This document shows positions 1-23,867 of a stretch of 64,000 bases of DNA, one piece after another. The first letter of the stretch is position 1. Every line of letters starts with the position of its first letter. The notes beneath the pieces are model-generated. The model worked only from the letters and a program-made list of their open reading frames with translations, did no database searches and was not told the origin of the DNA. Position numbers and translations under genes: made by a program. The DNA is from Cyanophora paradoxa CCMP329 (taxonomy: Eukaryota > Plantae > Glaucophyta), in contig QPMI01000667.1 of NCBI GenBank assembly GCA_004431415.1, forward strand, positions 1 to 64,000, in the 5' to 3' direction.

Positions 1-3000
1 AGCTCGCCCCGCTTCTCCCGGTAGAGCGCCACGTAGTGCCGGATGAGGTCGAGGAAGTGGCGCGGGGTGACGTAGTGCGAGCGGCCCGTGCGCCGCGCCA
101 GCGCCCCGCTCACCTCCGCCACCGACGTGTGGATGGCGACCATGCAGGAGACGAGCGCCTCCCGCTGCCCGGGGGCCCCCGCCCCGCCCAGGCTCGGGAG
201 CTCGACGCCCTCGGGGGGCGCGTACGCGGGGTCGTCCAGCTCCAGCGTCCGCGTGAACTCGAAGGCGACCTGCCGCCCCCGTCGGCCGCCGAGGGGCGCG
301 GCGGGCGGGGCGGGGCGGGGCGGGGCGGGGCGGGGGCACCTGGTGGAGGGCCGCCTCGGACCAGTCCCCGAACCAGTCGATGACGCAGCGGTTGAAGAGC
401 GCCGGGCTCGTCTGCCGCGGCGTTCGAAGGCGGCAGGGGCAGCGGGAGAGGGAGGGTGCGGGCGGGCGGGCGGGCCTGGTGGCGGGAGGTGAAGTCGGGG
501 TTGGCGGGGTTCATCGTGAAGATGACGTGCAGGTTGCGCTGGACCTGCGCGGCGGGCTCGGCGGGGGGCGGGCGGGGGGCGCGGGGCGCCGGGGACCTGC
601 TGGGTGAAGCGGCGGAAGAGCTCCTCGTCGGTGTCGAGCATGCCGCCCTCCTTGGCGAGGCCCTCCTTGATGGCGGAGAGGAGCGAGGCGCGCTCGTCCC
701 CCTCGAAGAGCCCCGGCACCTCCCCGCTCGCCAGCAGCGCGTTCATCCGCTCCAGGAACGCCGACGAGAGCACGTTCGACTCGTCGAAGATGAAGCAGAT
801 CTGCCACGCCGCCGTCAGCCAGGCCTCAACGGCGGCGAAAAGAGCTGCGGGGGCGGCGCGCCTTCTCGTTCTGGCAGCCGGCGCGCTTCATGACCTGCAG
901 GGGCGTCAGCGGGGGGCGCGCGGCTCGGGCCGGGGCGGGCGGGCCTTGCGGAGGTCCTCGTCGAAGTCGGCCGCCGTGTACCGCTTGCTGACCTGCGCGC
1001 CGCCGCGTTCAGCCGCCCGACCGGCGGGCGGGGATAAGGGGGGAGCGGGCGGGCCTTGATCTGGAACGTGGAGAGGCCGTTGATCCAGGCGACGAAGCGG
1101 GAGAGGACGGTCTTGCCGGCGCCCGAGGTGCCGATGAGGAGCAGGTGCCCGAGCGGCTGCCGCAGCACGCGGTCGATGCGCAGCACGTGGTCCAGCACCT
1201 GCCGTCACCGTGAGGGGGGGCCTGGCCGCCGCGCAGGCAAAGGGGGCGGGCCTCGTTGAAGACGACGAGGGGCACGTCGAGCTCCTCGTCGGCGAAGACC
1301 TTGAGCTTGGCCTTCATGTAGCTGCGCAGCTCGTCCCGCTCCACCGGCACGTAGTGCTTCGAGAGCCACGAGGAGTAGAGGATGGGCCGCTTCAGCGCCT
1401 GCGCCAGGTTCGCCGTGGGGAAGTACTTCTGGGCGACCTGGTCCAGGCACTGGTCCATCCAGGCACGCTCGTCGGGGCGGACGAGGCGGTCCTGGAAGAG
1501 GCGGAGGCCCTCGTGCACGAAGAGGCGCACGAGGCCCTCGATGGGCAGCGCGTCCAGCGGGCGCAGCGCCTCGTACATGGCCCGCACCCAGCGCGTCAGC
1601 TCCCGCGGGCTGTACACGTAGTGCGACTGCTGCTCCGCCGTGAAGTGCTCCTGCGGCGGGCGTCGGCGGCGGGGAGCGCGGGCGGGGGGCGACGGGGAAG
1701 GAGCGGGCCTGGGCGAGGGCGTAGGTCTCGACCATGGCGTCGGTGAGGGGCTGCGCGTTGGCCCGCAGGGAGGGCATGAGCTTGAGGGTCGCCCGGTTGA
1801 GCGTCGCGTAGATGTGCCCCAGCGCGTCCGGCGCCGGGTAGTCCACGAGGAGGAGCGGCGAGTGGCGCAGGAAGCGGGGGGAGAGGGGCACGCGGCCGGC
1901 GTCCGTCGGCGGGTTGCAGGCGGCGACGAACTGGACGCGCTCGAGGCGCACGAAGGCGACCGACGGGCTCGCCCGCCAGAAGCCGCCCTGCTCCGTGAGC
2001 TGCCGCAGGAACGAGATGACCCGCTGCGTCCCGTACCTGCCGCGGCCTCAGCGGCCGGAACGAAAGCGGGGAGCGCGGGGCGGGCGCACTTGTCGTTCTC
2101 GGGGAGGTTGACCTCGTCGCAGAAGAGGACGAGCCACTTGTTGGGCTGCGCCGGCCGGCACACGAAGCCGTCGGGCGTCTTGGCGATGTCGCAGTACTGC
2201 TCGAGCGCCTTGACGAGCAGCTCGGGGCGCGTCGTCGACGCGAAGTTGAGGGTCACCACCTCCGCCTCGGGGATCGCCCGCAGCGTCGCCTGCGGGGCGA
2301 GCGAGAGGGTCACGAGCAGAGGAGAGGGCGGGGGCCGAGGACGAAGAAGAGGAAGGGGCAGGCCTGGAGGGTCATGGACTTGCCGGAGCCCGGGGGCCCG
2401 CAGAGGACGAGGGGCCGGCGCTCGGCGAGCCAGGAGAGGAGGACCTCCTCGTGGCGGACCGTGTCCACCGTCGGGATCACGAGGTCCGACTGGGGCACGC
2501 GGTGCGCCTCGAGCTCCACAGCCGGCACGCGCCGCTTCCACGGGTGCCACTCCCCGTCCTCCACCCGCACCTCCACGTCCACCAGCGAGCCGGCCGCCCC
2601 CGTCGGCACCTCCACGCTCACCAGCGAGCTCTGCGCGCCCCGCCCCGCGAAGCGGACTCGGCCGGGGCGCGGCAGGCGCGGGGGCGGGCGGGAGGGGGGG
2701 CGGGCGGGCCTGGAGGAGGCGCGCGAAGGCGTCGCGGACGGCGTGGCGGGCGGAGCCGCAGAGGCCCCACATCATCGAGAAGACGAGCCGCTTCGTGATG
2801 TACCTGCGCGGAGCGCTCGGCGAGGGTCGGGGGAAGGGGAAGCAGGGCGGTGGCGGACCGGGCGAGGTGCTCGTTGGTCATGCCGAAGTCGACGTGGGAG
2901 GCGACGTACTCGAGGACGTTGCGGACGCCCTTGGAGAGGAGCGCGAAGGTCGAGGAGAGGGCGGCGAGGCGCGTCCACTCCATCACGTGCTCCTGCTGCT

Positions 3001-6000
3001 CCGCGAAGGCCAGCGCCTTCAGCACGACCCCGTCCCCCTCGAAGAAGGGCGCCAGCACGTCCGCGCAGCGCCGCTGCAGCGCCAGCGTCGGGCTCACCGC
3101 CGCCGCCGCCGGGCCGCCCCCGCCGCAGCCCCGGCCTCGCCGGCCGCCACGACGGCGGCGGCGGCGGCGGCGGCGGCCGCGGAGCGGTCCTCGGCCTCGA
3201 GCGGGGTGGAGCGGAGGGTGGCGAGGTAGTGGCGGAGGAGCATGTCGGGGGCGACGGTCTGCTCGCTGAACCAGACCATGCCGCAGCGGGAGACGGTCGC
3301 CAGCGTGGCGTACTTGAGGTCCTGCACCTCGAAGAGGACGCGCACGTTGGGCGGCAGGCCCAGGCGCTCCCCCGTCGGGAGCGTCAGGATCTTGTTGTCG
3401 TCGAGGACCGAGTTGAGGTTCTCGACCCACTCGGGGTCCACGTCGCCGTCGAAGACGATCCAGTGGCGGCGCGCCGACTGGCCCCGCGCGTTGTCCACGA
3501 TCTGCCGCAGCAGGTGCGTGAAGACGCCGTCCGTCCACTCCCGCGTGGTCACGTCCAGGTACCCTGCGCGGGCGTCGGCCCCCTCTGTATGGCGGGCGGG
3601 GCGGCGGGGGGCACCGTAGAGGGCCTCCTTGGAGAGGGCCTTGGGGTCGATGACGTACGCCTCGCCCTTGACGCCCTCCACGCGCGCCAGCGCCTCCAGC
3701 AGCACCCGCCACGCCGCCGTCTTCCCGCTCCCCGACGGGCCCACCATCATCACTGCGCGCGGCGCGTCGGCCCCGCCCCGTCCAAGACTGGTGCCCCCGG
3801 GGCGGGCGCAGGCGCACCGCCGTGGTGGAGGGCGGCGATCTGGGCGAGCTGGAGGAGCTTGTCGAGGAAGGCCTCGCCGGGGACGAGCCCGCGCTCCGCG
3901 CACACGGCGCCGGCCGCCTCGCGCAGCGCCGCCGTGTCCCGGGTGTGGACGGAGACGCCGGGGAAGACGTCGGCGAGGAGGGAGCGGAGGAGGGGGATGT
4001 CGTCCGCCACCAGCTTCGGCACGAGCGTCTCCAGCACGGAGCGGATGAGGACGCCCTGCTCCGCCTCCTCCCAGCCCTCCTGCGCCGCCTCCCCGGGGGC
4101 CTCGAGGGCGAGGGCGCGCTTGAGGGCGCCGGCCGAGTTGAGGACGGCCTTGAGGGCGCGCAGGCCGAAGTCGTAGTGGGGCTGGGACGAGAGCTGGTCG
4201 TGGCAGAGCTTGAAGAAGGGGATCGCCTTCGAGGCGAGCCGCTCCGCCGAGCGGAAGCCCTTCGAGAAGAGCATCACCTGCGGCGGGGGAGACATCAGGG
4301 GGCGTCCCGCCAGGTGGTTCGGGGCGGGGCGGAGGGCGGGCCTGGGCGATGAGCTCGCGGTCGGGCTCGATCATGGCAATGGAGCGGAAGAGCTGCTTGA
4401 GGTTGTCGGGGAGGTTCGAGCGCCCCGCGTACCCCGGGTTCATCGTCACGAACAGGCCCGTCTGCCGCCGGCGTCGGCAGGCGCGCGGGGGTCTTCGGGC
4501 GCGGGAGGCACCTGGGGGTGGACGCGGACGGACTTGCCGGCGAGGTCGATCTCCTTGGCGGCGTCGCGCAGGCCGAGCTGGCGGGGCGCCCGTCGGGGGC
4601 CGCGGGCGCGAGGGCGCGGGCGGGGCGGGGCACCTGGATGGCCTGGATCTGCTGGGAGACGGCGGAGAGGATGCGCTCCTCGAGGCGGTTGAACTCGTCG
4701 AAGCAGCCCCAGGCGCCCGTCATGCAGAGCCCGACGAGGATGCGGCCCATCGCGTGGAAGTCGAAGCGCTCGTCGCAGTTGAAGACGAGCGTGAAGCGGC
4801 CGAGGTTGGACCCCAGCTGCTTCACCGTCTCCGTCTTCCCCGTCCCCGCCGGCCCGAACGGGCTCCCTCCCATCCGGCTGTGCATCGCCTGCGACGCGGC
4901 TCAGGCAGGGGCGCGGGGTAGAGCAGCGCACGAGGCGGGGGGCGGGCCTGGGTGAGGGTGTAGAAGCATCGGTCGGTGAGGGGCGTCTGGACGAGGCGGT
5001 CCTGGACGCCCAGGTACTCGAAGCCGTAGACGAAGGAGGCGTTGGCGACGCGGATGGTGAGGCGCTTGAGGGGGTCGCCCTCGGCCGGCTCCCAGTAGGG
5101 GCGCATGTAGTAGAGCCAGGCGAAGTCGGCGGCGGAGGCGACGCGCTGGCGCTCGAGGCGGCGGGCCACGTCGCGCTGGTGCACCAGCTCCGTCACCAGC
5201 ATCTCCACCTTGCGCCGCCGCGCCGCCGGCAGCTCCGTCAGCACCGCGTCCGCCAGCGCCTGCGCGGCGCCGAAGGTGAGCGGCGAGCGGGGGGGGGAGG
5301 CGGGAGGAGCGGCAGGCGCGGACGCGGAGGTTGGCCTCGACGCGGGCGATGGCGGCGGGGAGGTCGGAGGCGGCGAGGGCGCGCTCGACGGCCTGCACCC
5401 AGGCGACCTGGGCGGCCAGCACGGTGACCTGGCACGGGTACTTGTCGAGCCAGGCGGCGAAGGCGGGGGAGGCGAAGTCGAGGGGGGCGAGGATCTCGCG
5501 GATGGCGTCGCCCGTGGCGGCGGCGAGGGTGCGCTGCAGCTCGGCCTCCATCTTGGTGAGCCAGGCGCTGATCGCCGGGTCCTCCTTGATCGAGACGGGC
5601 TTCCCGAAGAGCACCTCCTCCCCCTGCGGGGAGACGACCCCCCGGATCTGCCGCGGGGTCAGCGGGCCGCCCTCTGCGGGGCGGGGGGGCGGCGGGGCGC
5701 ACGTGGGCGGCCTCGGCGTCGAGCAGGAGGGCCCCGATGCCGGCGAACATCTTGCGCAGGTGCCGCTGCACCTTCGACCTGGCCGGGCGACGGGGGTCGG
5801 CGGTGGGCTCCTAGGGAGAGCGGGGGCGGGGCGGGCGCACGGGTCCTTGGCGTTGCCGATGATCTCGAGGAGGTCCTCGTCGCCCACGAAGTAGAAGCGG
5901 GGGAAGGCGGCGCGCCCCCGCTCCAGGTACTCCCCGAGCGCCTTCTGGATCTTGGAGAGGAGGTCCGCCAGGCGCCCGAGGGCCCGCGCCAGGTCCGGGA

Positions 6001-9000
6001 TGTTCATCACGTCCATCACCAGCGGCTGCTTCGCCACCTTGCGCATCACCGCCAGGAACTCGTTGTCGATCACCTGCGCGGGGGGCTCGCGTCGCGGGGC
6101 GAGGAGGCGCGGGGCAGAGGTGGGGGAGAGGAGGACCTTGAAGCGCTGGTGCTCGGCGGGGAGCTGGGCGGCGATCTCGGCCGACCCGAAGAAGATGCCC
6201 TCGAGGTAGACCCAGCGGCGCTGCACGTCCACCCACGTGTCCAGCAGCATCCGCAGCCGGTTCAGCTTCTCCTCCCACGCCGTCCCCTCCTCCTCGAACA
6301 CCTGCGCCCGCCCGCGTCGCCGCGCGAACGAAGCGGAGGACGGAGGGCGGCCGGACCTTGTAGTAGGGGGACATCTTCATGGAGGAGAGGCCGTTGATGT
6401 GCTCCCCGACCTGCGCGGGCGAGTGAGCCGGCGCGCGGCGGCGGATCCGCGCGGGGGTGCGGGGCGGGCGGGCCTTGCTCATGAGGTCGTCCCAGCCGCG
6501 GACGAGGCGCGTGCGGTCGCGGAAGGCGACCAGGTCCAGCTCGAAGGCCGCCCAGTGCTCCTTGATCTGCACGGACCGGCGTCAGCCGCCTCCGAAGCCG
6601 AACTGGCCGATGGCGGGGGCGGGGGCGGGGGCGGGCCATGCGGAGGTACTCCTCGAGGGCGAGCTCGCCCTGGGCGACGGCGAGGACCTCGCGCACGGCC
6701 TTCTCCCGCTGCGCCAGCTCCGCGTCCCACAGGTCCCCCAGCGTCGCCCTGCCCCCGACCGCCCGCTGAGCTGGGCGGGGCGGGGCGGGGCGGGGCGGGG
6801 CGAGCGCACGAGGCGGGGCCCCAGGAGACGCGGAGGCGGGCGGCGAGGGCCTTCCAGTGGCGGTCGCGGAGCGCCTCGGACTTGAGCTCCGAAATGAGCA
6901 CGTTGACCTTCAGGTGCTCCTTCAGCGCGTCGTGTATCTGCCGCCCCGCCTCGTCAGCCGGGCGCGCGCGGGGCCGGTGGGGGCCGCGCGGGGCCGACCG
7001 ACTCGTAGACGGCGTACTGGCGGATGCGGGCGGGGAGGGCCCGCAGCGCCTGCAGCGTCTCCTCCAGCGACGTCCGCACCTGCGGGGGCCGTCGGCGGGA
7101 GCCGGCGGGAGGGGCGCGGCGGGGCGCGGGCCTTGCGGGGCACGACGGCCGACCAGGGCGTCTCGCGGAGCGCCTGCATCTGCTCCCAGACCTGCGGCGC
7201 GGCCTCGGGTGCGGCGGGGGCGGGGGCGGCGGGGCGGGCGGGGCGGGACGGACCTTGGAGACCTCGGAGTAGGCGCCCTTGAAGTCGCGGATCTCGTCCT
7301 CGAGGGGCGCCAGGCGGTCCACGAGGGGCCCCTCCAGCCCCAGCGCCTCCTTCGCCCGCACAAGCCGCCCCTGCTCCTCCTGCGCCCCGCCCCGCGTCGC
7401 GAGATGGGCGGGCGGCGGGGGCGGCTGCACGGGCGCGGGCGCGGGCGGGCCTTGGTGCGGTTCAGGCGGGCCTCGAACTGAGCCAGGAGCTCCAGCGCCG
7501 CCGACGGGCGCACGTCGCCCTGCAGCAGCCTCAGAGGCCGAGGAAGGCGCAAAGAGGCGGGGGCGGGGGCGGGCGGGCCTGGAGGGGCTTGCGGGCCTCC
7601 CAGTCGTCGAGGAGCTCCCCGATGCGGGCGTCCAGGGCCCGGTCCTCCGCCGTCACCTGCCGCCAGCCTCGGGGCGGGCCGGGAAGGGAGAAGGGGCGTG
7701 GGGGGGACCTTGGCCTGGAGGGAGGGGACCTCGGCGCGGATGACGCCGTCCTTGCGGGCGAGGATCTCGTTGAGGGCCGTCCACTCCCCCTCCGCGTTCT
7801 CCACCTGCGTCCAGTCCGACGGGAACTGGAACCTGCCCCGCCGCCCCGCGTCAAGAGAAGGAAGGGGGAGGGGAAACATGGCGGGGGCGGACCGCTGGCG
7901 CTCGAGGAGGCGCTGGCCGGCGACGAAGGTCTCGAGGTCGTAGGTCCAGCCCTTCATCTTGCGCTTCATGTCCTGCACCTGCAGCAGGAACGTGACGGCC
8001 TCCGCCACATCGCTGCCCATGGCGCAGCCCTCGAGCTGCTGTCGCCCCTGGTTGAGCGCCGAGTGCAGGCCCCGGATCGAGTCCCCGAGGGTCCGCCCGA
8101 ATGTCCCCAGGATCTCCTTGTGCCAGGCGTCGTACTTGGTGGTGACCTTGGCCTGCACCTGCCCGATGTCCACCGTCACGGGGCCGAACGCCCGCTCCGT
8201 CTCCGACGTGTCGAACGCCGTCCGCGCCTGCCGGCGCGTTAGATACGGCGGCGGCCACCGGGGGAAGGCGGCGCCCGCCTTCTTGATCTGGACGAGAAGG
8301 GCCTGCCAGAGGCGGAGGTCGGAGCCGAGGCGGGCGTAGACGGCCGCCGGGTCGAGCTCCCAGAGCGCCTGGTACTGCAGCCACGTCCCCGCGTACGCCC
8401 GCACCTGCCGGCCCGTCAGCGCCGACGCGTGCAGCCCTCGGGAGGGGCGGGCGGGCCTGCTCGAGGAGGGCCTCCACGGCGCGGTACCCGTTGAAGAGGG
8501 TCCCCGGGGGGAGCTTCGCGAGGACCTCGACGTAGGTCGCCTGCGCGGGGCGCCGCGCCGTGAGAAGGAGACCGGAGGGGCGCCGGACGGGCGGCACCTT
8601 CTCCTTGGTGGCGGCGGGGTGGCCGATCTTGCCGCGGGGGGCGGCGCGGGCGGCGGCGAGGATGTCGAAGCGGGCGGCCTGGACGCGGGGCAGGTCGCAG
8701 ACGACGGCGACGGCGGAGTGGAGGGAGGCGATGTAGGAGAGGCGGGCGTGCTCGAGGGGCGGCTCCAGCGCCATCTGCCCGTTCCGCAGCGCGATCTCCA
8801 GCACGACCCGCTCCATGCGCCCGCCCCAGGCCCCCGCCCCCGCCCCCTCCTTGCCCTTCGCGTCCCGCGGGGCCGAGAAGTCGGCGACCCAGGCGGCGAG
8901 GATCTCCTGGAGGCGCCCGGCGAGGATCTCCTCGACCTGGGCGTCCAGGGCGCGGGCCCAGCCCTCGAGGCCCGAGAAGGAGCCGAGCTCGAGCTCGTCC

Positions 9001-9535
9001 ACCCACTTCTGCACCTTGCCCAGGTGCTCTGCCATCACCTTCTGGTCCAGCGCGCACGTCCGCAGCGCCGCCACGTGCTCCCCGACCTTATCGTGCGCCG
9101 CCAGCGCCTCCTGGACCTGCGGCCGGCCTCAGAGGCGCCGGCCCTGGCCCGGGCGCCCCGGAAGGCGCGCCTTGTTGGCGAAGGTCGAGACGGCGTCGGC
9201 GAGCTTCTTGGCGTACGGGCCGACGCGGTCCCCGCCCCAGCGCAGCTGCACGCCTGCCGCGGGGTCACGCCGCGCGCGGCCGGGGCGCGGGCCGGTGGCA
9301 CACCCTCGGTGAAGAGCGCGTGCAGGTCGCGGCGGTAGGAGGCGACGAGCGGCTTCACGCCATCGTGCAGCGACGAGACCGCCTGCGGCGGGTCAGGGCG
9401 GGGAGGCCTCGAAAGGCAAGGGCGGCGCGGGCCTGCTTGTACGTGCGCATCGTCTCGGAGAGAGACATCGCGAAGGGGTACAGCTCCCGCGCCTCGTTCG
9501 AGACGAGCAGGATCTGCCGCGCGTGTGCCTCGCGT

Positions 9536-9570
<35 letters not shown>

Positions 9571-12500
9571 GGTGCAGGGCCTGGTCCAGCGAACGGCGGA
9601 CTCGCACCTTGTAGGGGATGTGGAAGCCCATGGTGTGAAGGTTGCGGACCTCCTTAAAGAGCGTGATGACCTGCCGGCAGCGGCGGGCGGCGGCGGCGGG
9701 TCGGAGGGCGCGGGAGGGGTGCGGCGCGGGGGCCGGCAGCGGACCTGCGGGTCGAAGTTGACGGCGAGGGAGAGGGCCCCGGCCTTCTCGGAGAGGGAGA
9801 AGATGCGGCCCTCGAAGGAAAACGCCCGCGCCTCCATCTCCCCGACCCACGCGTCGAACATCTGCCGCCGCAACGGGTGAGGCCGGCGCGGCGGGCGGCG
9901 TCGGTTGGGAGGCGCGGCGCGGGAAGCGCACGGCTTGCGCGTTGAGCTTCTTGCCGAAGGCCTCGCCCTCCTCCTTCAGCTTCTGCCCGTCGCGGTGCGT
10001 GCTCCACTGCTCGCCCAGAACGTCCTGCAGCCGCTGCATGTACGTCCCAAGCTGCCGCTCGATCTGCCGCGCCCAGATGATGGCTCCTGCACGCGCGCAC
10101 GCGCGCGGTGAGGCGCGTGCAAGAGACTGATGCAGCTGCGGGGGCGGCACCGGAGACGGGCGGGATGTCGCGGACGTGGGACATGTAGGAGGCCTCGGAC
10201 ATGGAGTAGTCGGTCTTGAACTTGTCCTGCAGCGCCTTGATGTCGTCCTTGACGCGCTGGATGAGCTGCGCCTGGTACTCCTGGATCGCCGCCTGGATGC
10301 GGGGTCTCTTGAGGAGGGCGTTGAACTTGGAGAAGACGCGGAACATGTCGGCGGCGTTGCGGGCCGCCCCGAGGCGGTCGCGCAGCTTGGACGTGATGGC
10401 GCCCTCCACGCGGTCCACCCGCGCGTCGTACGCCTTCACCGCCGCGTCGAACGCGTCCGTCCCCTCTGCGCCCCCAGCGTCACACGGCCCCGCGGGAGGC
10501 GCGGCCTCGGGCTCGGGCGGCGGCGCGCGCCCTTGCTCGTGTCGAGGACGTCGACGGCGGCGACGGTGTCGTAGGCGGCGGCGATGTCGCGGAGCACGCC
10601 GGCCTCCGCCCCGCCCCCCAGCACCCGCCCGATCACGCTCCGCAGGTCCTCGTGCTGCCGCCGGAACGCCCGCAGCGTCCCGATCCGCCGGCTCAGCTGA
10701 AGGTCCGGCAGCTGCACGGCCCCGCTCAGCGAACGCTCCCGGCGATCGCGCGGTGAGGGAAGGGGCATGCGGGCGAACCCGCGCGGGCAGCTTCTCGTTT
10801 CGGCGCTTGGCGAGCTCGCGGGCCTGGGCGCGAGCTCAGGGGGAGCAGGGGCGCGGACGTGAGGGGGCGGGGCGCGCCTCGTCGCGAAACTTGATGAAGT
10901 GGGCCTCCCAGGACGTGAAGAGGCGCTCGCAGTTGGCCGCGATCTGCCCCGCCGGAGGTCGCGGGGCGGCGGCGGGGCGGCGGCGGGGCGGCGGCGGGGC
11001 GGCGCGCACGGCGTCGAACTCGTCGAAGGGGAGGGCCATGAGGCGGCGGGCCTGGAGCAGGCGGACGAGCTGGACCTGGGCGTCCCGCCAGACGGCGTCC
11101 ACGAGGGCCAGCGCCCGCGGCACGGGGTACTTCGACTTCTTGAGGGAGCGCATGTGGGCGAAGACGGCGGCAGCGCCGGCCAGCATCTTCTCCACGTCGC
11201 CGGCGGCCAGCAGCTCGTTCAGCGGCAGGTCCCGCACCACCAGGTTGTAGTCCGTTACTGCCCCCCGGGGTGAGACACAGGCCCCGCGCCCGCAGGGGGC
11301 GCGCCGCGCACCCTTGTCCACCGAAGCGCGCAGCTCGGTGTCCTTCTCGAACTGCGCCGTGACCTGATACCGCCGGGCTTGCTTCAGCACCGCCAGCGTG
11401 AGCTCTGCTGGCCGGAGTGAGAGACGCCCCTGGGCGCACCGAGAGAGAGCGCACCGATCTCCGGAGTGGCGACGAGCTCGGTGGCGGCCTGGAGGGCGCG
11501 CTCTAGAGCCGGCCAAAAATTGATCTCCTGGATAGCGGAGCCGATGGAGGCCTCGCGCTCCCTGCGCGGCGCGGCGCGCTCAGAGATCGGCGGCTGCGAC
11601 GCAGTGCGGGCCGTCCGAATGCGTCGCGCGCCGCACCGCTTCTCGATAAGGCGGGTAAGGCGCTGGATCTCGCGCGTCCAGCGCGTGACGCCCGCCTGCA
11701 GTCCGTTCAGGAACGCGGCGTCCTGCGCCTTCTCGCCGAGCAGATCCACGCGGGGCTTCTCGCCGGACTCCTTGCACTGCCGAGCGCGCTTGTTCATACA
11801 TTCTCGGCCGCTAGGGTGAGCTGCGGGGACGCGCACGGAGGCAACGATGCGCTTGATTTCCGCGTCGACGGCGAGTTGGACCTCGGGGATTTCGACGTTC
11901 TGCTGGCACGTGACGAGCGACAGGAGAAGCTCGGCCATGCGCTTCTTGACAGCGGGGATTCCTGAGCCGGGTCAGCGAGCGCCCTGGAGACCAGTGCGGA
12001 ATGCAAGCTACCGAGCTTCGGGTCCTTCTCGTCGGGCTTCGCCTTCTGCGCCTGACCGGCAAAAGAATCGAAGTACGGCGAGAATGAGTTCTGCAGGTAC
12101 AGGTGCAGCGTCTCCAGCGGGGACGTGTCCGCAAGGAACGGCATGATGAACAGCTGCGACGCCAGAGAGCGGCCCTTCGCGCTTTCGACCGTGGCAGCAC
12201 GCTTGAGGACGCACACGCTCTGCGTCTTGGCGCCGTGGTACGCGACCTCCAGATCCGCGACGAAGGAGTAGGCTTGCGCAGCAGGAACGTTGTCGTCGGG
12301 CTCGTTCTCATCCGCTGCATTGCAGCGCTGCGTCAGAGATGCGAGTGCGGCGCGCGACCGCTTTGGGGCGCTGGGACTCGCGCTGGGCCCGCCAGCGCAT
12401 TCAAAGATGCGCCGCACCCTCGACGGCGCCCGAGTCCCCGCGGAGCTTGTGAAGCGAAAGCGCTTGTACTTGCGCATCTCCAGCGAAACTACGAAGCTTG

Positions 12501-12652
12501 GCGCGCGTGGCTGGGTCGCGGAGGAAGCGCTCCAGCTCGCCCGCCTCGCACTCCAGGAGGGCCGGGCAGAGCTTCAAAAGATAGTCGCTGAGCGCAGCGA
12601 CATCGCCCTCGCTCGCCGCAGTGAGCGCTGGCCCGTCTTCGGCCGCAGCCAT
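1..12652 (-). CDS. DYNC1H1: Cytoplasmic dynein-1 heavy chain, 5' portion (tail, linker, AAA1-AAA4); about 53 introns in the window; continues beyond position 1
   Basis: Spliced fragments give AAA1 [17 protein letters not shown] and [17 protein letters not shown]2 GPSGSGKT and [27 protein letters not shown]3 [13 protein letters not shown] and [12 protein letters not shown]4 [19 protein letters not shown] and TSPALFNRC. These are dynein-1 (not axonemal or dynein-2) signatures. ATG at 12652 (MAAAEDGP). Confidence 0.96.
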
Positions 12653-15165: not shown

Positions 15166-16291
15166 TCATACGGTCTTCTTCGCGGCCTGGGCCCTGGGGC
15201 CGGGGGCGGCAGGCCCCTTGCCGGCGGCGCCGAGCGGGTCGTACAGGAGGTTCTTGATGAAGGCGTGGCCCACGAAGAAGGCGATGAGGCCCGCCTCGAA
15301 GAGCCGCGCGTCCTTCACGAAGGGGTTCCCCTCCGGGAAGAGCGGCGACGGGAACGCTACGAGGAAGTACAGCAGGCCGCAAGACAGGGCCGACTTCGAA
15401 GACCTGCCGGCGCGCTTCGGGGACCGGCCTCGGCGGGGGCCAAGGAACGCCGCAGCTGTGCGCACCAGGTGGGGGACCGGATCTCGCCCGGAGTCGTCTT
15501 GTCGCCGCTCAAGTACCTGTCCATGTTGCCCCAGAGCGTGCCGCCGAAGCCTGCGGGGGCGTCAAGGCTCGCAGAAGCGCGGAAGGCAGGTGAGGAAGCA
15601 AACCCCAGAGGCTCCCCATGACAACTGTGGAAAACATGGCGCCGGGGTACTTGGCCGCCGTGCGGGTCACGCCCTAATGTAGAGGTGAATCCAGGAACGA
15701 CAGAGACACGTAACCGAAAACAGTGCAGACAGTGACGATTACGCGCGTCCGCGAAACCTGCCCCAGCGCAAATAGGACGGCCTTCGGGGCATTAGCGCTT
15801 TTCTGCGCGCTTGCGGCGAGTGCAGCGCACCCGCAGCGGAGCGATTCTGCGCAGAGCCTTGAATACAATATCTCCGGGGGAGAGCAGCACGGCGACCCTT
15901 CACAGCGGATGTTGAGCAGTTGCTGACCGCGCGCAGCATCGCGGGCTGCGGCGGGCGGCCCGCGCACCAGCACGCAGCGAAAATAGCGACGACCTTGTCG
16001 TTCGCCGCCCATTTCACGGGGTCGCCGATGAACAACGAGCCCATCGTCGAGCCGCCGAAGCAGGACATGAAGCTGAAAAGGAAGTGCCTGAGCGGAGATT
16101 GGGCTCAGCTGCGCGCAAGCGAAACGGAGCGTACACGCACACCAGACCCAATTCTTGCCGAGGGAGTCGTGCCGGACATAGCAGACGTTCACGGCCAGGC
16201 CGACCAGCGCAAGCTCCCATGGCACGGCGTGTATGAAGGCCGAAGCCGTAGCCACGCACTCATTCATCGCTAGCGCGCTGGCTAGGTCCAT
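15166..16291 (-). CDS. TRIC (TMEM38)-family trimeric intracellular cation channel
   Basis: Several hydrophobic segments, including FMSCFGGSTMGSLFIGDP, PKAVLFALGQVSRTRVIV, GFGGTLWGNMDRYLSG and EIRSPTW-SSKSALSCGLLYF, which resemble the two Gly-rich TRIC repeats and the E..PS..TK motif. C-terminal KKTV resembles a KKxx ER-retrieval signal. Confidence 0.7.
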
Positions 16292-16397
16292 CGCGGCGAC
16301 GCTGCGGACTCTCCAGTGCAGAAGAGGGGTAGGGGGGTCGAGGGAGGAAGAGGGGGGGTACGGCGGTGACGAAGTGCTGTTGTGCAGCGTTTCCAAG

Positions 16398-19300
16398 ATG
16401 AGCAGCTCGCTCAGCCTAGTGGATCATGGCGCGAGCCCCAGCAGCGCCCTGCAGCGGCTTTTGGCCCAGAAGAACCAGGCAAGCCGGGCATGGCGTTGCT
16501 CTAGATGCTCGGAACAGGGCGTGCAGCTGGCTAGCACAGAGCTTGTAATCGTGGAGAAAAACATATTCCGCTACATAGATTTTTCCGCCGCAGCGCTTAG
16601 CTAATTGCGATTCGAGCTGACGTCCGCCTTAGGAGCTGGAAGACAGGAACAAGCTGCTGCTCCAGGCCCGTGCAGCTATCGAGAAGATGCAGATCGAAAT
16701 CGAGGCAGTTCGAAGCGCCGAAGACCTGCAGCGCCGGCAGACCCGCCGCGCGTACGAGGACTCGCAGTCGAGCCTCACATCTCTCCAGGAGGCCCGCAGG
16801 CCGAGATATGGTGTGAAGCAGCTTTCTGACGTTGCCGGGTCCGCAGGCGCTTCGCCATCAGGAAGAGAAGGAGCGTGGCCACCTGAATGAGATCAGCTCC
16901 TTGCGGACCCAAGTGGCGGAGCTGCAGGCTCAGTTGGCCGTGCAGAACACAGTCCGTGAGGAAGTCAAAGACCTGCGTAACAGATCGCTGCTGGTACAGT
17001 ATAGCTGCGGGCTGCGCCGGGGCCCCCACCCTAAACCTGATGCAGACCCCACACGCAGCTAGAGGAGCAGCTCCGCGAGAAGGACGTTGAGCTGTCCGAG
17101 GCCCGACGCAAGATCACCGATCAGGCACTGGAACTTCAAGTGAATGCGGGCTGACTCGTCGGCTGATGCCGAATTCGCCCTGACTTGTGTTCCAGATCAA
17201 AAGCTCTGCTGCTGGGCAGCTGAATGTGAAGCTTGAGGAGCGGGATCGGGTGTTGCGCCAGCGCGAATCCGATCTACGTAGCGCTGTTCGCATTTGAATT
17301 CCTGCATCGGCTTTTTTCGGCTTGAATTACGTTATCGAACAGGAATCGCGGGAGCGCCAAATGGAGAGCGAGATGGCTATGATGCAGGAGGAAATTGCTC
17401 GTTTGAGGGACCAGATGAAGTTACGGGAGAGCGAGCTCATCTCACGGTCATTAATTGCATTGCTTTAATGGAATCTCGAAAGCTGAAATCTGGCGACAGA
17501 TTTGAGAGGGAGAAACGAGAGATTGAGGGACACATGCGTGCAGAGGGCGATGCAAGGACAAACATGATCCAGTCCCGTGCGTTGAACCCGTCTTCTCTCC
17601 GTCTCCACGACAGCGCGAAAGGTCCGTGCAGGGATACAAGAGCTTGCTGTCAAGGAAGCATCCCTTTCTGCACAGCTGTCCGAGCTCCACACGTCTTCCG
17701 ACACACGTGTTGCTGCCGAGCGTGCAAAGAGTGCTGAGCTAGAGCGGCGCCTTCAAACAGAAACGAGAAGGTTCAAGCAGCTTTTGCAGGCAAAGCAAGA
17801 AGAGCTGGAGAAGATGCAGCGCATTCATGATCAAGATGTCATCAAAGCACGGGAGCTGATGGCGTCAGAGCTACAGGCCCAGGTTTGCCGCAAAGAGATG
17901 CACGCTCGCTTGTCAATAACACAGTGTTTTTAGAGAGCTCAAATGCAGTCACTGATGTCAAAGAAGGATGCTGGCGAGGTGAGTCTTTGGATTGTTGGTC
18001 ATCTTTCAATTCTTCGTTTGCTTCCCAATGATCGAAATGTCCCAACAGAAACTTCAAAGTGATGCAAATGCACTCCTCTCCAGCATTTCGGCTCAGGTGA
18101 ACGAGCTGAAGAAAGAGCTATTTTCTGCCATGGACAATGACGTTGTTGAAGGGCATGTGAATGTCTGGTGAGCTCTGTATTTCAATTCTTTTCATTATCG
18201 CCGTTCAACCCTCTGCTTTAGGCACAGAATGATTCTCGAGCGGTTGAAGACGCTCATTGACTCAGTGGATCAAAAGATCCTCCGCTCAACATCAACTCCC
18301 TGGCAGCGTTTCGGGCTGCAGCAGGAGCCCTCCGTGGATCCTCTCAGCCATCGTGCCTTGTGGCCAACTTCAAAGTCGGTTGGGAGTGTCAAAGTTCCGG
18401 ATGATGTTCACGAGCTGAGGAAGATTGTCACGAGCTCCTGCCGTCAACTTGGTGTGGACGATGCCCAATCACTCCCTGCAGTCATCACAAGGTGCAGTGT
18501 AGCCCTATGATGTGCAAACGTTTCTGACTCGACACAAAGGACGGCCAAGCTTGTCACCTCCATTCCACCTCTTGAGAAATTCATCGATGATGTAATGTCG
18601 ATTGTGAAAAGGCATCGCTCCCTGGAGGGAAGCATCATCAAGGATGATGACCAGCCCCTCATTCGCCACCCAGAGGCTGGCACCCCTGAAGATGCTCTTA
18701 TCGAGATACAGTCCTGGTCAGAGTCCCTGCGCAAGTCTGGGGAGATCCGTCTTCTCAAGAAGCAGGTTGTCAAAGCGCTTAGGTGAGCATCCTCGCATGG
18801 TGCTCTCTGGACTGATCTGACATATCCCCTGTAGGAAGAGGTCTGTGGGAAGCGAAGACCTTTCGACCAGGCGGGCTACAAATGAGAGAATCATCAATTC
18901 GGTGGGCCCTTTGTTGCACCCCCGGGAAGGAGGCCTGCTGATCATCGTTGCTAGATTCGTGAGCTTGTACTTAATGAGAGAAGTTTCATAGCCATCCAGC
19001 ACCACTTCCATGATGCAGAGACCCTGATGAAGGCATGCTTTATCCCTAACTCAACCTGCAAAAGCTTCTCAATACAGTATCAAATCGCAGGTCAAACCTG
19101 ACGTCATCACTCACAAGATTGTGTCTGTCTTCCAGTCGCTATTCTCTGTGAAAGGTATCTTTCTATCTGCATGGCCTTCCTGATCGTGATCGGACGTCCT
19201 TATTTCCTCATCCAGGTCTCCACCACGTTCTCCCGCGCATGCATGATGGTGAGTTGTCGAAACTGCTATAAGTCTGCCCTGCCCCTCGCATTTCCTGAGA

Positions 19301-19455
19301 ATCTAAACCTCGCAGTCTACGTGGAGCACAACGACTACCAGCTAGCCTTCAAGCTCATCCGCTCCATGCTCAAGCTCAACTCGGATGCGTCTGTCTCAGA
19401 GGTCCTCAACGGCATCAGAAGGGTCGTCTGTGCTCAGATGGGCACAGCTGTATAA
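16398..19455 (+). CDS. Coiled-coil centrosomal/basal-body protein, CEP70 (CRC70)-like
   Basis: Long coiled-coil exons (EKERGHLNEISSLRTQVAELQAQL, ELERRLQTETRRFKQLLQ). C-terminus KIVSVFQSLFSVKGLHHVLPRMHDVYVEHNDYQLAFKLIRSMLKLNSDAS resembles the CEP70 C-terminal domain. ATG 16398, TAA 19453-19455. Confidence 0.65.
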
Positions 19456-19925
19456 CCCTCTGGAATTTTGCGTAGCATCACGCAAACTGTTGAAATGAGA
19501 AGTAACATGCAATGCGTTAGCGTAGACGTCGACACGATAGCTAGCTGCATCCTTGCGCCTGGGCTACACTCGCAATTGCCCATGGGCAGGTGCGGATCCG
19601 ATATCGATCGCTGTTAACGTTGCCGGCCCCCCGCCGGCGCGAGCGCCGCCGCCACGGCTGGCACGGACGACTAGCTCAGTGACGCGTACGGGTGCAGATC
19701 ACGTCGTGGTGGGCCGGGCCGGCCGCGCGGGAGCCCGGAATCCTGCGCCGCAATCGTACCCCCCTTCTGGTGAAGACTGAAGAAGCCGAAGACAGTGAAC
19801 TTCGCTGAGCCAGTACTAGTGCCGGTACTAGCGTATCGAAAGTCCGCATAGTTAGCTAGCAACGCTGTCGCCTGTAGCCTAGCCGCTGAGCAGCGCTCGC
19901 AGCTAGATTGACGCAAACAAAGTAA

Positions 19926-21179
19926 ATGGGCTCGCGGGGATCGCGGCACCGGCATCCGCCGCCGCAGCCGCATCGACCACCGCCGCCGCCGCCGCCGAAG
20001 CAGCTGCCCGGCCCGGCCGTCAAGCCGCCAGTCCCAGTACACCTGCCGCCGCCGCCGCCGACTCCAGGGCCCGTCGTAGCACCAGATTATCTATGTAGAG
20101 AGGGAGACTATCGGGGCAAGGCGATGCCCAAGGTCCGCTACAGTTCATCGCACCGCGGTGGGCGGAACTGTGAGCGTACGCACAGGCATACGCGATCCAG
20201 CTTGTGGCCAATCCGAAGATGTGCTGGCATTGGATCGATGGCACCGATGAGATAGAGGCGAGTCTGCGATTTCCAACGCCGAGCATTCGTGCAAATGTAA
20301 CTTGCTGTTTTTCGGGTGGGTGGCGCAGGTCTCCGACGAGTGCAACATCAAGTGCGTCCTCTCGGCTCCTCCGACGTTGCAATATGTATGGGGCTTGCTA
20401 TCGGACTCTTATGTTTATTCCCGCTGCCGCAGCGACCCTGCATATCAATTCAAGTTTGACACTAGTATGAGAATCCAGTCAGTGAAGCACAACAAGTGCG
20501 TCTCTTTTGTGGCCGTCATCCCTCGCATCCCCCTTAAACCCCGTGGACCCTCTCTTAAACCCCGTGGACCCTCTTACAGTAAATGCCTGGATCTGTCTTC
20601 TTCAAAATACAAGGTGCAAGAGTTTCAAATGATGGATATTCTATTCTCATGCTTGGTGTGCAGACGGGCGACACTGTCAAGGGTGGGACCTGCGGAGACA
20701 GGCCGACGGAGAAGTTTTTGGGGAACATGGTGAGAGGAAAATGTTTTGCTTATGGAGACAGCTGTAGTTGAAGGCCCAGACGCAGAACAAGTACCTGAAG
20801 ATCTTCAAGGGCTGTGAGCAAGGAACAAACAAGCACATCAAGGGCTACGCTTCTGGGTGAATTCTCGTCAGACTTCGGTTCTGTTTATTGCCCTGGACCC
20901 CTTATCTCTTTTCGTCAAGGTATGGCCGCTTCCATGTGCTCAACGAGCTCACAAAGTGTGTGGGCATCGAGGGGAGCTCTGGGGAATTCACTGGCAAGCA
21001 TCCCTTGGCACTGGACGAATGCAGTGTGGGTGCGTGCCAGAGGCTCACATGTTATGCCTCCAGACCGCCTGGCATATTCTGACCATGCACTCTCTTCAGA
21101 TCTAAAAGACCAGGTTGACGCCTCTTCCCCTCTTTCCCCCCCGGCCCTGGAGACAGTCCAGTCCCCACCCAGTCTCTAA
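19926..21179 (+). CDS. Proline-rich protein with Cys-containing ricin-B (beta-trefoil)-like region; possible N-myristoylation
   Basis: MGSRGS start and poly-Pro tract, followed by exons LVANPKMCWHW, YQFKFDTSMRIQSVKHN-KCLDL, KGGTCGD and GRFHVLNELTKCVGIEG..LALDECS, similar to the ricin-B 'I.s....CLD' repeats. Confidence 0.5.
20533..20574. repeat. 21-bp perfect tandem duplication inside an intron
   Basis: cttaaaccccgtggaccctct x2 immediately before the acceptor tacag. Confidence 0.9.
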
Positions 21180-21448
21180 CTTAAAGGCCCGGTACGATCA
21201 CGTAGGACTGGCAAATCGTCCCCGTCAAGCAGTAAGTCTTGATTCCCTCCCAAGTGTTTTCGAACCATTTGGTTGATTAGTATCTACATTTCAGGCTGGA
21301 ACCATACCGAGCAATTGTTGATGAAGAAAATCTCATCTCATCCCAAGACTCGCCAGTTGAGGTGCTGAGTGCCTTTCTGTCAGGCTTTGCTCCTTTCTCA
21401 AGATTCCACGTGTAAAACGCAGTCGGGAGATGTGGATGTCGGTTTTGG

Positions 21449-21502
21449 GGACGATCATGAAAGCGGGCACCTTGCGGACGATCATGAAAGTGGGCACATT
21501 GC
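21449..21502. repeat. 27-bp tandem repeat (2 copies) in convergent intergenic region
   Basis: ggacgatcatgaaagcgggcaccttgc / ggacgatcatgaaagtgggcacattgc. Confidence 0.85.
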
Positions 21503-21826
21503 CCCTGCCCATCTCGCATAAAATGAAACCTTGGATAGCAATTTGTGACGAAATACTTCCGAAATACAGACATAGTCTTGACAATAAACAGCTATATGTC
21601 GAGCGATGGCGGGGTGAAGGAGAAGAGAGGGGGTTGGATTGCAGGGGCGGTGTAGTTTCGTGATGGTTTGCGGGTGTGCTGGGGACGGTCCTCGGGCACT
21701 ACACGGCCATCTGTCATAGATGTGATGGAGTTGGACCGTGCCTGTCGTTGCGCAACCGATACTGCTGGTGATGACCTCCCAGAGTTGGAGGAGTCACTAG
21801 TCAGGGCCAGCACCTATTTGAGCACG

Positions 21827-23072
21827 TCAACCTATGTCTGGCAATGTTGATGGGTTCTGATTCGGGCTGCCATTCACCTTTCCAATCGAACCTCCGGGAC
21901 TCGAGCTTGGATAGCTTGCATCACGAACCATGTCAAAGCTTCGCCGCTGAGGGGGTATGACCGTTGGTCGCAAGGTGGAGTCATCCTTCGATGGAGTGTC
22001 AGGATCTCGCTTCACGTCTGCTAGTGCACTCAGGGCTGGCGTCTTCTCCACTTCTTTGGGTGGGTTCTGTAAGGAGGCAGGCTTCCAATCTGCGGAACTG
22101 GATTAAATCAACCGAAACACATCAGTTTTGCACGTGGCACACCGTATTTCTTCTGCAGAAACGAAGGGCACAGCGTGAAGTCTGTCAATGCACAGAGGAC
22201 AGGCTTTGCACCGCACTTCCGCACCTTCATGGCCTTTACGTGTTCGATGCACTTCTTCCATGCGGTATCCCTGGGCATGCCCCGCAGCTTACTCCAGGCC
22301 TCCCACTTCAACCGCCGCACGAGATCCAGGAACGCGGGTTTGTCGTATCTGTTGTCACCCTTCCAGCCCTGGTGGAAGAGCGCGTACAGCTGAAGCTGCA
22401 GGGCCGTGGGCTTAGGATCGCTCAAGCACGCAGCACGGAGCATTAACCTTCTCTTCGTTGCTCATCTGCCCCGCGAGATCCCGTCCCTCCTGTGCTTCCA
22501 CCAAGAACTCGGCCTGAATCGACTTATCCATGATGTCCCGCACCTGTGTATCCAAATTAGCGTGCGCCTGGCCGTATTTTATGGCACGAGGAATCGAAAC
22601 AGGCAGACGGCGGCATTGAAATCAGCCGGGCCGGAGAGGCTGGAGCCCTGACGCAGGTGCGGACAGCGCGCCCGGATGAGAGAAAGCCTAGCCAGAAGCT
22701 CCAGCACGAACGCCTCTCTAGCTGAAGCTGCGCAACGCAACTGGCTCGAAAACAATGCTTGCAGGCCTCGTGTGCCGGGGCTCCCTGCGCACCGCTTGGA
22801 TTCGATATAACTTGGCGCATGAGCGTGTAGAGCTTGATCTTCTCTCGCAAGTCGGCCGAGTCCATGCAGCCCTTCACTGCTGCAACGGCCTCCTCGAAAC
22901 GCTGGCCGAGGGGGCTTCGTGAGATGCACGAAGCAATCTAGCTTAACTAGCATCGAGCAATCGTGCTAGGCGAGGCCCCAGGAATTGCGGCGCACTTCCT
23001 GCTGCGCCCTGGACCCTCCGATCGAACGCGTAGAAGGACGCCCGCTACTCCAACTAGAGGGGAAGCAGCCAT
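21827..23072 (-). CDS. Acyl-CoA-binding (ACBP)-domain protein, with a probable second degenerate ACBP repeat; start uncertain
   Basis: SNEEK|LQLYALFHQGWKGDNRYDKPAFLDLVRRLKWEAWSKLRGMPRDTAWKKCIEHV is a typical ACBP domain. Upstream RFEEAVAAVKG..REKIKLYTLMRQ looks like a partial repeat. Includes a 10-nt exon at 22143-22152. Confidence 0.75.
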
Positions 23073-23670
23073 CGAAATACTTGGAGTCGCCTAGAAAGCT
23101 GTTTTGCAGGTTAGTTGGCGGAACCACGAACCAGGAACCAGTTAGCCATAGGCAGTATTAGACAGCTGTTAGCGGAGCCAGTGGTAGCAGGCGGGGCGGG
23201 CGCACGAAAAGCAACTGAACATCTTCGCAGCTGAGGAGGCTTACTGCGCCCGGCGGCTGTGGAGCCGCCGAGGCCGGGAAGCGCGGGGCGACAGGCTACA
23301 CGAAGGTGTAAGGTGTATTTTCAGCGATCTGAAGCTCAGAGTCGGGAAAGCTAACGTTGCGGGAGATGCCGCAGAGCGCCCGGCGGCCGCGCGGCTGCTA
23401 ACTGTCGGTTGGGTGGGGTACAGTGCCTGGTCGATACGCAAAGGGGGGTCGAAGCGAAAAGAGCCTCGATATTAAATATTAATCGTACTTGGTATAGCTA
23501 GCGCTATAGCTTTTGCGAGTCCCCTGCTGCCTCAGCATCGGGCTGCCCGCATGGGCCGCATGATGTGGCCCGCATCCCCATATGCATATGCATGGTCGGC
23601 ATCGGGCTGCCCAAATCCCCATGGTGATGACTACAGCTGGCCGCACGGCGGATGCGTGCTTTGCCCCGCC

Positions 23671-23724
23671 GTGCTGGGGTCGTCTTGGGGCAGCGGGGTC
23701 ATCTCGGAGCAGCGGGGTCATCTC
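23671..23724. repeat. 19-bp-period minisatellite (2 good copies and 1 degenerate) within a cluster of short direct repeats (23535-23787)
   Basis: gcagcggggtcatctc at 23690 and 23709; gcatcgggctgccc x2; gtcgatgctgca x2. Confidence 0.7.
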
Positions 23725-23867
23725 CAAGCGTGGTAGAAAAGCACCTTGTCGATGCTGCACGGGATATGAGTGCAGGTCGATGCTGCAATAGGAGATGAGG
23801 GGGAGGGAGCTGGCACCCCTCACACTCTTGGATCGGACCAGATCAGCATGTGCATATCATAGCGGCA

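Follow-up and report, generated by a model that had tools for sequence, protein, structure and literature searches.

A dynein heavy chain gene of the glaucophyte Cyanophora paradoxa contains short introns, a large share of which begin with GC in place of GT. The gene occupies, on the minus strand, the first 12.6 kb (positions 1-12652) of a 64,000-nucleotide (nt) stretch of contig QPMI01000667.1 from strain CCMP329 (assembly GCA_004431415.1), which was analyzed over its whole length and is hereafter called the window. Among the 35 dynein introns whose boundaries are supported by RNA contigs or by homology, 15 are GC-AG and 20 are GT-AG introns, corresponding to a GC-AG share of 43% (15/35), or 50% (10/20) if only the RNA-supported introns are counted. 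Together, these introns define the donor consensus AG/G-Y-S-C-G-C, in which Y denotes a pyrimidine, S denotes C or G, and the slash marks the exon-intron boundary. On balance, we favor the view that these are ordinary U2-type introns of a GC-rich and intron-dense genome that are removed with the help of canonical small nuclear RNAs (snRNAs), and that their 5′ splice sites have been shifted by GC-biased substitution.

Identification of GC-AG introns in a dynein heavy chain gene

The identity of the gene is given by a 134-residue exon (window 1250-1653) that matched full-length dyneins at up to 65% identity, and tblastn searches with three full-length dynein homologues tiled positions 3-12354 of the window in approximately 30-34 frame-switching segments. 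The 3′ part of the gene leaves the window at position 1, and its 5′ end, above position ~11455, lies outside the set of placed introns. The G+C content of the window varies from 55 to 80% among 4-kb bins, and the dynein gene has 73-75% G+C. Within positions 1-11311, exons contain 70.7% and introns 84.9% G+C, and the coding strand of the introns is strongly C-rich (55% C, 28% G). The dynein introns being richer in G+C than the exons agrees with a published report in which C. paradoxa alone, among the species surveyed, had an intron GC content exceeding that of its exons (PMC6142364). For the genome of this species, a published description gives 67.6% GC and introns averaging 86 bp in length, at 9.2 per gene (PMC6704402).

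Positions 1-6000 of the window were compared with contigs from four sequencing runs. Three of these runs (X1, X5 and X8, from three studies) represent RNA, because their contigs skip segments of 50-79 nt, and the fourth (X12) represents DNA, because an unspliced contig spans positions 719-2658 with zero differences. Among the joints listed for the RNA contigs are 13 true introns, of which eight are GC-AG and five are GT-AG. For each listed joint, every placement that yields an identical spliced product was enumerated. At eight joints (412-475, 801-861, 895-944, 993-1054, 1199-1251, 1651-1708, 2290-2363 and 2631-2709), GC-AG is the sole AG-ending placement and no GT-AG placement is possible, so that the GT boundaries that junction reads might have revealed, a possibility raised together with the original prediction of abundant GC donors, do not exist at these sites. 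The intron at 993-1054, which had served as the example in that prediction, is thus a GC-AG intron. Pieces of RNA contigs support seven more junctions, two with GC donors (4278-4341 and 4889-4947) and five with GT donors (270-339, 4462-4511, 4578-4633, 5260-5323 and 5648-5702). Furthermore, because the X12 DNA contig agrees exactly with the window, the C residue at position +2 of six of the GC donors is genomic.

Junctions were also ranked by homology. Exons were searched one by one, and spliced peptides were used only for the ranking of candidate junctions, which comprised all frame-compatible, stop-free candidates between covered segments with a GT, GC, GA or GG donor and an AG acceptor, or with AT-AC termini. 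Each candidate was scored by comparing its local spliced peptide with 50 full-length dyneins by blastp and averaging the scores, with no prior for the donor dinucleotide. For 15 of the 16 RNA-supported single-intron junctions, the supported placement was found at rank 1, and for the sixteenth it was found at rank 2; where the margin was 3 bits or more, every candidate that could be checked was correct. This ranking added 15 introns in 5779-11311, and the resulting supported set of 35 introns is listed here with the evidence for each (margins in bits).

412-475, minus strand: GC-AG intron, cag/GCCCGC; RNA joint in X1 and X5; sole AG-ending placement
801-861, minus strand: GC-AG intron, aag/GCGCGC; RNA joint; X12 DNA contig unspliced here
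895-944, minus strand: GC-AG intron, aag/GCCCGC; RNA joint
993-1054, minus strand: GC-AG intron, aag/GCCCGC; RNA joint
1199-1251, minus strand: GC-AG intron, gag/GCCCGC; RNA joint; homology rank 1
1651-1708, minus strand: GC-AG intron, cag/GCCCGC; RNA joint in X1, X5 and X8
2290-2363, minus strand: GC-AG intron, cag/GCCTGC; RNA joint
2631-2709, minus strand: GC-AG intron, cag/GCCCGC; RNA joint
4278-4341, minus strand: GC-AG intron, cag/GCCCGC; X8 contig pieces 4177-4276 and 4341-4461; homology rank 1
4889-4947, minus strand: GC-AG intron, cag/GCCCGC; RNA piece boundary at 4946; homology rank 1
6411-6473, minus strand: GC-AG intron, aag/GCCCGC; homology margin 6.1
6567-6636, minus strand: GC-AG intron, atg/GCCCGC; homology margin 6.3
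7080-7131, minus strand: GC-AG intron, aag/GCCCGC; homology margin 4.7
8405-8456, minus strand: GC-AG intron, cag/GCCCGC; homology margin 3.8
9117-9170, minus strand: GC-AG intron, aag/GCGCGC; homology margin 4.7
270-339, minus strand: GT-AG intron, cag/GTGCCC, with a (CCCCG)n tract; RNA piece 1-271; homology rank 1
545-596, minus strand: GT-AG intron, cag/GTCCCC; RNA joint in X1, X5 and X8
2037-2089, minus strand: GT-AG intron, caa/GTGCGC; RNA joint
2804-2858, minus strand: GT-AG intron, ccg/GTCCGC; RNA joint
3564-3614, minus strand: GT-AG intron, acg/GTGCCC; RNA joint
3753-3817, minus strand: GT-AG intron, gcg/GTGCGC; RNA joint
4462-4511, minus strand: GT-AG intron, cag/GTGCCT; X8 contig pieces; homology rank 1
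4578-4633, minus strand: GT-AG intron, cag/GTGCCC; X8 contig pieces; homology rank 1
5260-5323, minus strand: GT-AG intron, cgc/GTCCGC; RNA pieces 4946-5258 and 5323-5647; homology rank 1
5648-5702, minus strand: GT-AG intron, cac/GTGCGC, with CTGAC 11 nt from the 3′ end; RNA piece end at 5647; sequence
5779-5840, minus strand: GT-AG intron, ccc/GTGCGC; homology frames and parse
6074-6136, minus strand: GT-AG intron, aag/GTCCTC; homology margin 5.3
6302-6356, minus strand: GT-AG intron, aag/GTCCGG; homology margin 5.8
7657-7708, minus strand: GT-AG intron, aag/GTCCCC; homology margin 6.3
7833-7892, minus strand: GT-AG intron, gcg/GTCCGC; homology margin 5.0
9671-9744, minus strand: GT-AG intron, cag/GTCCGC; homology margin 7.8
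9862-9931, minus strand: GT-AG intron, gcc/GTGCGC; homology margin 4.2
10087-10150, minus strand: GT-AG intron, ccg/GTGCCG; homology margin 6.1
10944-11009, minus strand: GT-AG intron, gcc/GTGCGC; homology margin 3.7
11258-11311, minus strand: GT-AG intron, agg/GTGCGC; homology margin 4.9

The 15 supported GC donors comprise 12 GCCCGC, two GCGCGC and one GCCTGC. A weaker tier of calls consists of introns that come from a parse only. A naive ab initio parse (GT or GC donors, codon log-odds, minimum intron 35) was dropped, as it shortened many introns and clashed with the RNA joints, whereas a constrained parse overran the true start of the gene, and its false introns above position 12000 were discarded. 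With the 11 weaker calls, the set grows to 46 introns, 21 of which have GC donors (15 GCCCGC, four GCGCGC, one GCCTGC and one GCCCTG). The original prediction had counted 53 introns with 21 GC donors; the 46 introns placed here contain an equal number of GC donors, and the hexamer counts differ at a single site. Approximately 6-8 further introns belong to regions outside this set (above 11455, and within 3050-3200, 8457-8660, 9433-9670 and 10531-10943). On the central point, that this gene uses GC donors, the RNA joints, the DNA run and the dinucleotide-blind homology ranking all agree with what had been proposed.

A few features of the gene call for separate mention. The segment 3050-3200 (minus strand) is an Ala-rich (GCC)n coding stretch with an in-frame TGA in the dynein motor region. 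It must hold one intron, which could not be placed, and 3094-3188 was excluded as a repeat from the contig comparison. At 11558-11644, the top homology candidate had a GA donor and a margin of 3.0 and was dismissed as implausible. Two long joints (470 to 4354 and 3300 to 4144) were likewise not taken as splicing events, because they are found in the DNA run as well as in the RNA runs and have only 21-28 nt on one side; they probably result from assembly chimeras or from short repeats in the dynein gene.

A GC-rich splice site consensus that exceeds intron background

The 35 supported introns are 50-79 nt long, with a median of 60. At their donor sites, the exon ends with A at -2 in 24/35 and G at -1 in 29/35 cases, and the intron begins with an invariant G at +1 (35/35), followed by T (20) or C (15) at +2 and by C (21) or G (14) at +3, where A is never found (0/35). 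The next three positions are C at +4 (34/35), G at +5 (27/35) and C at +6 (32/35). A pyrimidine occupies +4 in 35/35 introns and +6 in 33/35, and G does not occur at +4 (0/35). No GTAAG or GTGAG start was found among the dynein introns placed, consistent with what had been noted originally, and the donor logo of these 35 introns supports AG/GYSCGC as the optimal site.

Given the composition of these introns, a C-rich donor could simply mirror its surroundings, a possibility that had been raised for the CGC motif from the outset. The local intron background, taken from positions +7 to +20, is 0.66 C, 0.20 G, 0.11 T and 0.03 A. Relative to this background, there is an excess of +4C (p = 9e-6), +5G (p = 1e-12) and +6C (p = 5e-4). 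Because of this excess, CGC at +4 to +6 represents more than composition, and the signal is stronger than background.

The 3′ splice site reads GCAG: all 35 introns have C at -3, 33 of the 35 have G at -4, and a U-rich tract is lacking. Of the 35 introns, 32 carry a branch-like motif, C(Y)GA(C/G) or CTCAC, whose adenosine is located 11-18 nt from the 3′ end; CCGAC, GCTGA and GACGC each occur 7-10 times in the 3′ zone of the introns and not once in the 5′ zone. In the exon that follows, the first base is G in 24/35 and the second is T in 24/35 cases. The bare hexamer GYSCGC occurs 32 times at donors, versus 42 unspliced exonic and 51 intron-internal copies, whereas the 8-mer AGGYSCGC is found at 18 true donors with only three exonic decoys. 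Such a number of GYSCGC decoys indicates that a donor also depends on its exonic context and on the remainder of the intron.

Two further observations concern the surroundings of these sites. Most exon-exon junctions read AG/GT, resembling a proto-splice site, with the downstream exon starting with GT in about two thirds of cases. Microsatellite-like (CCCCG)n tracts lie just past the donor at 290-341, which was excluded as a repeat from the contig comparison, and also within 6749-6809 and within 10944-11009.

Dependencies among donor positions fall on sites of canonical U1 pairing

The two donor classes differ in the context that accompanies them. An exonic AG precedes 14/15 GC donors versus 8/20 GT donors (p = 0.0015), and +5G and +6C occur together in 15/15 GC donors versus 11/20 GT donors (p = 0.004). 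G at -1 is found in all 15 supported GC donors, and the early observation that every GC donor combines G at -1 with +5G and +6C thus applies to the entire supported class. Among GT donors, +5G is kept in 2/8 sites that follow AG versus 10/12 sites without AG (p = 0.019; p = 0.010 when the weaker calls are included). This trade-off between exonic AG and +5G is the compensation pattern that had been described from the sequence alone. Furthermore, G at +3 occurs in 12/20 GT donors versus an expected share of 0.20 (p = 1e-4), but in only 2/15 GC donors (p = 0.007 for the difference between classes). Finally, the share of C at +2 is 0.43, versus ~0.86 expected from the pyrimidine composition of the introns (p = 3e-9), and GT is therefore still under selection and is favored approximately twofold over the neutral expectation.

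The 5′ end of U1 has the consensus sequence ACUUACCUG, and the corresponding U6 element is the ACAGAGA box. Canonical U1 pairs -2A with U, -1G with C, +2U with A and +5G with C, and accommodates +3G through a wobble with pseudouridine. Every dependency observed among the donor positions falls on a position at which canonical U1 pairs (-2, -1, +2, +3 and +5). As the GC donors need full support from their flanking positions, GC acts as a weaker form of the donor.

A probable origin of the donor consensus in GC-biased substitution

The explanation that we favor is that strong pressure from GC-biased substitution has shifted the 5′ splice site of an otherwise canonical U2-type system. Positions that pair with U1 via G or A, or that are catalytic, would have been retained (-2A, -1G, +1G and +5G, along with the +3G wobble in GU donors), and where other eukaryotes have U or A, the site would have changed to C. 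The tolerance of U-to-C changes through an A-C wobble is the usual account of GC donors. By the same logic, an A-C wobble might be the least damaging GC-rich replacement elsewhere in the donor, and the pyrimidines at +4 and +6 would have been kept facing the A residues of the U6 ACAGAGA box and the U1 5′ end. The 5′ site of yeast introns, GUAUGU, reportedly pairs with the ACAGAG of U6, and the donors described here may resemble it in presenting pyrimidine-G-pyrimidine at +4 to +6 to the A-C-A of U6. They would differ from yeast in that the pyrimidines are C rather than U and that the flanking pairs are A-C mismatches or wobbles; CGC at +4 to +6 could thus represent the U-to-C transition form of a yeast-like UGU. 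At +2, the U-to-C change would be only half tolerated, such that a GC donor persists only when accompanied by AG, +5G and +6C together. The remaining recognition may be provided through intron definition, by the short length and C-rich content of the introns together with their branch and GCAG signals.

Several points weigh against this explanation. First, canonical U1 would favor G at +4, through a G-pseudouridine wobble, over C, and yet G is absent from this position (0/35); canonical U1 thus leaves +4C unexplained, and the explanation needs either the argument from U6 and A-C wobbles or a protein contact. Second, the GC donors match canonical U1 at a mean of 4.5 of 9 positions, and some 4-5 pairs of nine are very weak by animal or plant standards. 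Third, searches of the 64-kb window with Rfam models, at gathering thresholds or with E values up to 1, found no U1, U6 or other snRNA. Fourth, the sample consists of one dynein gene and argD, and the proportions reported here are those of these genes rather than of the genome. Lastly, the basis for an origin in GC pressure is correlative only, and Micromonas RCC299 has 64% GC yet only 2.7% GC-AG introns (PMC3033335).

Alternative explanations

The surplus of C at +4 and +6 over local composition and the lack of G at +4 (0/35), neither of which is explained by U1 pairing, are also what would be expected if, with canonical snRNAs, a component acting as a protein or through RNA modification had adapted specifically to the reading of C at +2, +4 and +6. 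Candidates include contacts made by U1C, Luc7, U1-70K or Prp8, as well as extra 2′-O-methylation or pseudouridylation of U1 or U6. The consensus would then be an actively recognized code and not tolerated drift. The same proposal has been made by Iwata and Gotoh for Aureococcus and Micromonas pusilla (PMC3033335). It finds no direct support in the window, which harbors no splicing-factor gene or snRNA, and the C excess is also explained by the retention of a pyrimidine opposite A; we consider an adapted component of this kind to be fairly unlikely. Stated for the major spliceosome as a whole, the idea that some component reads C at +2, +4 and +6, whether a variant U1 copy, a modification in the ACAGAGA region of U6 or contacts by U1C, Luc7 or Prp8, appears rather unlikely. 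If a component of this type were indeed at work, GYSCGC would constitute a true lineage-specific splice code.

The original prediction went further in suggesting that the 5′ end of U1 and/or the ACAGAGA box of U6 have co-evolved so as to base-pair with G-Y-S-C-G-C. A consensus stronger than background would fit this suggestion, as would the poor pairing with canonical U1 at ~4.5 of 9 positions. However, a U1 RNA carrying G opposite +2 would read GC and GT alike, whereas the compensation required is greater for GC than for GT donors, with GT favored over the neutral expectation; this asymmetry is not predicted by a U1 that has been re-tuned to C at +2. The enrichment of +3G in GT donors is likewise what is expected of a canonical pseudouridine. 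To our knowledge, U6 ACAGAGA is almost invariant across eukaryotes, which counts against a co-evolved U6. In addition, other GC-AG-rich algae, namely Aureococcus and M. pusilla, keep the canonical U1 5′ end (PMC3033335). Given this last fact, the GT preference and the location of the dependencies at canonical U1 positions, the co-evolution of U1 or U6 is improbable, and this part of the prediction is not supported.

It is highly improbable that the GC donors are artefacts of misplaced boundaries, assembly errors at +2 or pre-splicing C-to-U editing: no positive evidence for this was found, and although high-GC sequence offers many alternative GC dinucleotides and contigs cannot display pre-mRNA, the eight listed GC joints allow no GT-AG placement and recur in runs of up to three studies, the DNA contig is exact across six GC donors, a homology ranking free to pick GT, GA, GG or AT chose the same sites, and Pfam positions are contiguous over a GC intron in argD (see below).

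Three special intron classes were considered and rejected. U12-type introns, which like the GC-AG introns are a non-standard class and of which 77 have been reported in C. paradoxa (PMC10639083), are excluded by the donor logo, in which only C and G occur at +3 and 34/35 introns have C at +4; unlike U12-type introns, no intron here has an RTATCCTT donor or the TCCTTAAC branch consensus. An introner-like family was rejected after an all-against-all blastn comparison of the 46 introns, in which matches reached at most 33 nt and all corresponded to (CCCCG)n-like tracts. Hairpin or structure-bridged introns with "zipped ends" were rejected as well, the mean z score for folding stability being +0.19 with no intron below -2 (100 dinucleotide shuffles for each intron).

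Relationship to other GC-AG-rich genomes

High GC-donor use had been noted for some other algae, and the literature confirms this. In Aureococcus anophagefferens, whose genome has 69.5% GC, 39.6% of introns are GC-AG, and in Micromonas pusilla CCMP1545 the share is 22.2%; in both species, the U1 5′ end is identical to the consensus (PMC3033335). The dynein gene resembles these genomes in its high G+C content, in a GC-AG share that, within this one gene, amounts to tens of percent and in its normal AG acceptor. It differs from them in its glaucophyte lineage, in introns that are richer in GC than the exons, in the GYSCGC donor and in the GCAG acceptor. Moreover, whereas canonical U1 has been shown in Aureococcus and M. 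pusilla, here we infer it. Re-annotation of pelagophytes gave 14-17% GC-AG introns (bioRxiv 10.1101/2024.10.30.620910). In the haptophyte Emiliania huxleyi, ~56-65% of donors are GC, as verified by RNA and attributed to the GC content of the genome, and ~4% are GA (PMC4028052). The dynein gene is similar to E. huxleyi in that GC donors are at least as frequent as GT donors, in the AG acceptor and in misleading gene predictors; in contrast to E. huxleyi, no non-GY donor is needed here.

In animals and plants, GC-AG introns make up ~1% of introns (PMC3167603, PMC6310983), and their frequency in the dynein gene is 40-50 times the animal or plant level. The introns described here resemble them in being probably U2-type, in carrying C at +2 and in showing compensating exonic AG and +5G. 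The compensation in animals and plants consists of a near-perfect AG/GCAAGT, whereas in all 15 GC donors described here A is absent from +3 and +4, and T from +6.

Among the papers searched, there was no published account of GC-AG abundance in Cyanophora. The abundance of GC-AG introns in a glaucophyte represents a further lineage with a known but unexplained phenomenon, and glaucophytes appear to be the fourth independent deep-branching lineage of this kind, after pelagophytes, prasinophytes and haptophytes. With this added case, the association of GC-AG introns with extreme GC content becomes stronger. Iwata and Gotoh (2011) described the cause of such abundance as an enigma and suggested modifications or proteins (PMC3033335). 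The introns of the dynein gene also offer a natural experiment on the minimum of U1 pairing required at a 5′ splice site, with the dependencies at -2/-1, +2, +3 and +5 visible in a single gene. There is also a practical consequence, in that gene prediction for the Cyanophora genome fails unless GC donors and the GYSCGC and GCAG signals are modelled. The published Cyanophora annotation has been described as needing manual curation (PMC6704402), and the gene models of E. huxleyi suffered from unmodelled GC donors (PMC4028052).

The argD gene and other features of the window

The same donor style is found in a second gene of the window, argD, which encodes a class-III aminotransferase. The exons around 55623-55694 match Pfam family PF00202 at positions 176-241 and then 242-270, and the profile is thus contiguous from 241 to 242 across the junction, which bears out the proposal that this segment is a GC-AG intron. 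A parse of argD that was made without a donor matrix yielded five credible introns, one with a GC donor and four with GT donors (GTCCGT, GTGCCC, GTCCGC and GTGCCC), the donors being of the style seen in the dynein gene. Two of the argD introns are as follows.

55623-55694, plus strand: argD GC-AG intron, aag/GCCCGC, ending in CTGCAG; PF00202 positions contiguous across the flanking exons
55797-55861, plus strand: argD GT-AG intron, aag/GTGCCC (exonic AG, no +5G); sequence, ab initio parse without donor matrix

The argD product (window 54557-54800, plus strand) begins with MESVAAF, and approximately 80 residues precede the aminotransferase domain. This N-terminal extension of ~80 residues, with its early Phe, is likely to be an organelle-targeting presequence. 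A 48-nt "intron" parsed at 54623-54670, within the presequence region, is doubtful.

Elsewhere in the window, positions 17000-25000 form a region of ~8-9 kb with only 51-58% G+C, few long open reading frames and two small tandem repeats. Two open reading frames inside this region and one just upstream of it (15677-16396) have no Pfam match. The region may be intergenic or a degraded mobile element, within a window that otherwise has 70-80% GC. Finally, positions 57140-57219 (plus strand), directly upstream of a TFIIS-like gene, show a weak full-length match to the box C/D small nucleolar RNA (snoRNA) family Afu_300 (27.7 bits, E = 0.34, below the gathering threshold), and this segment could be an intronic snoRNA.

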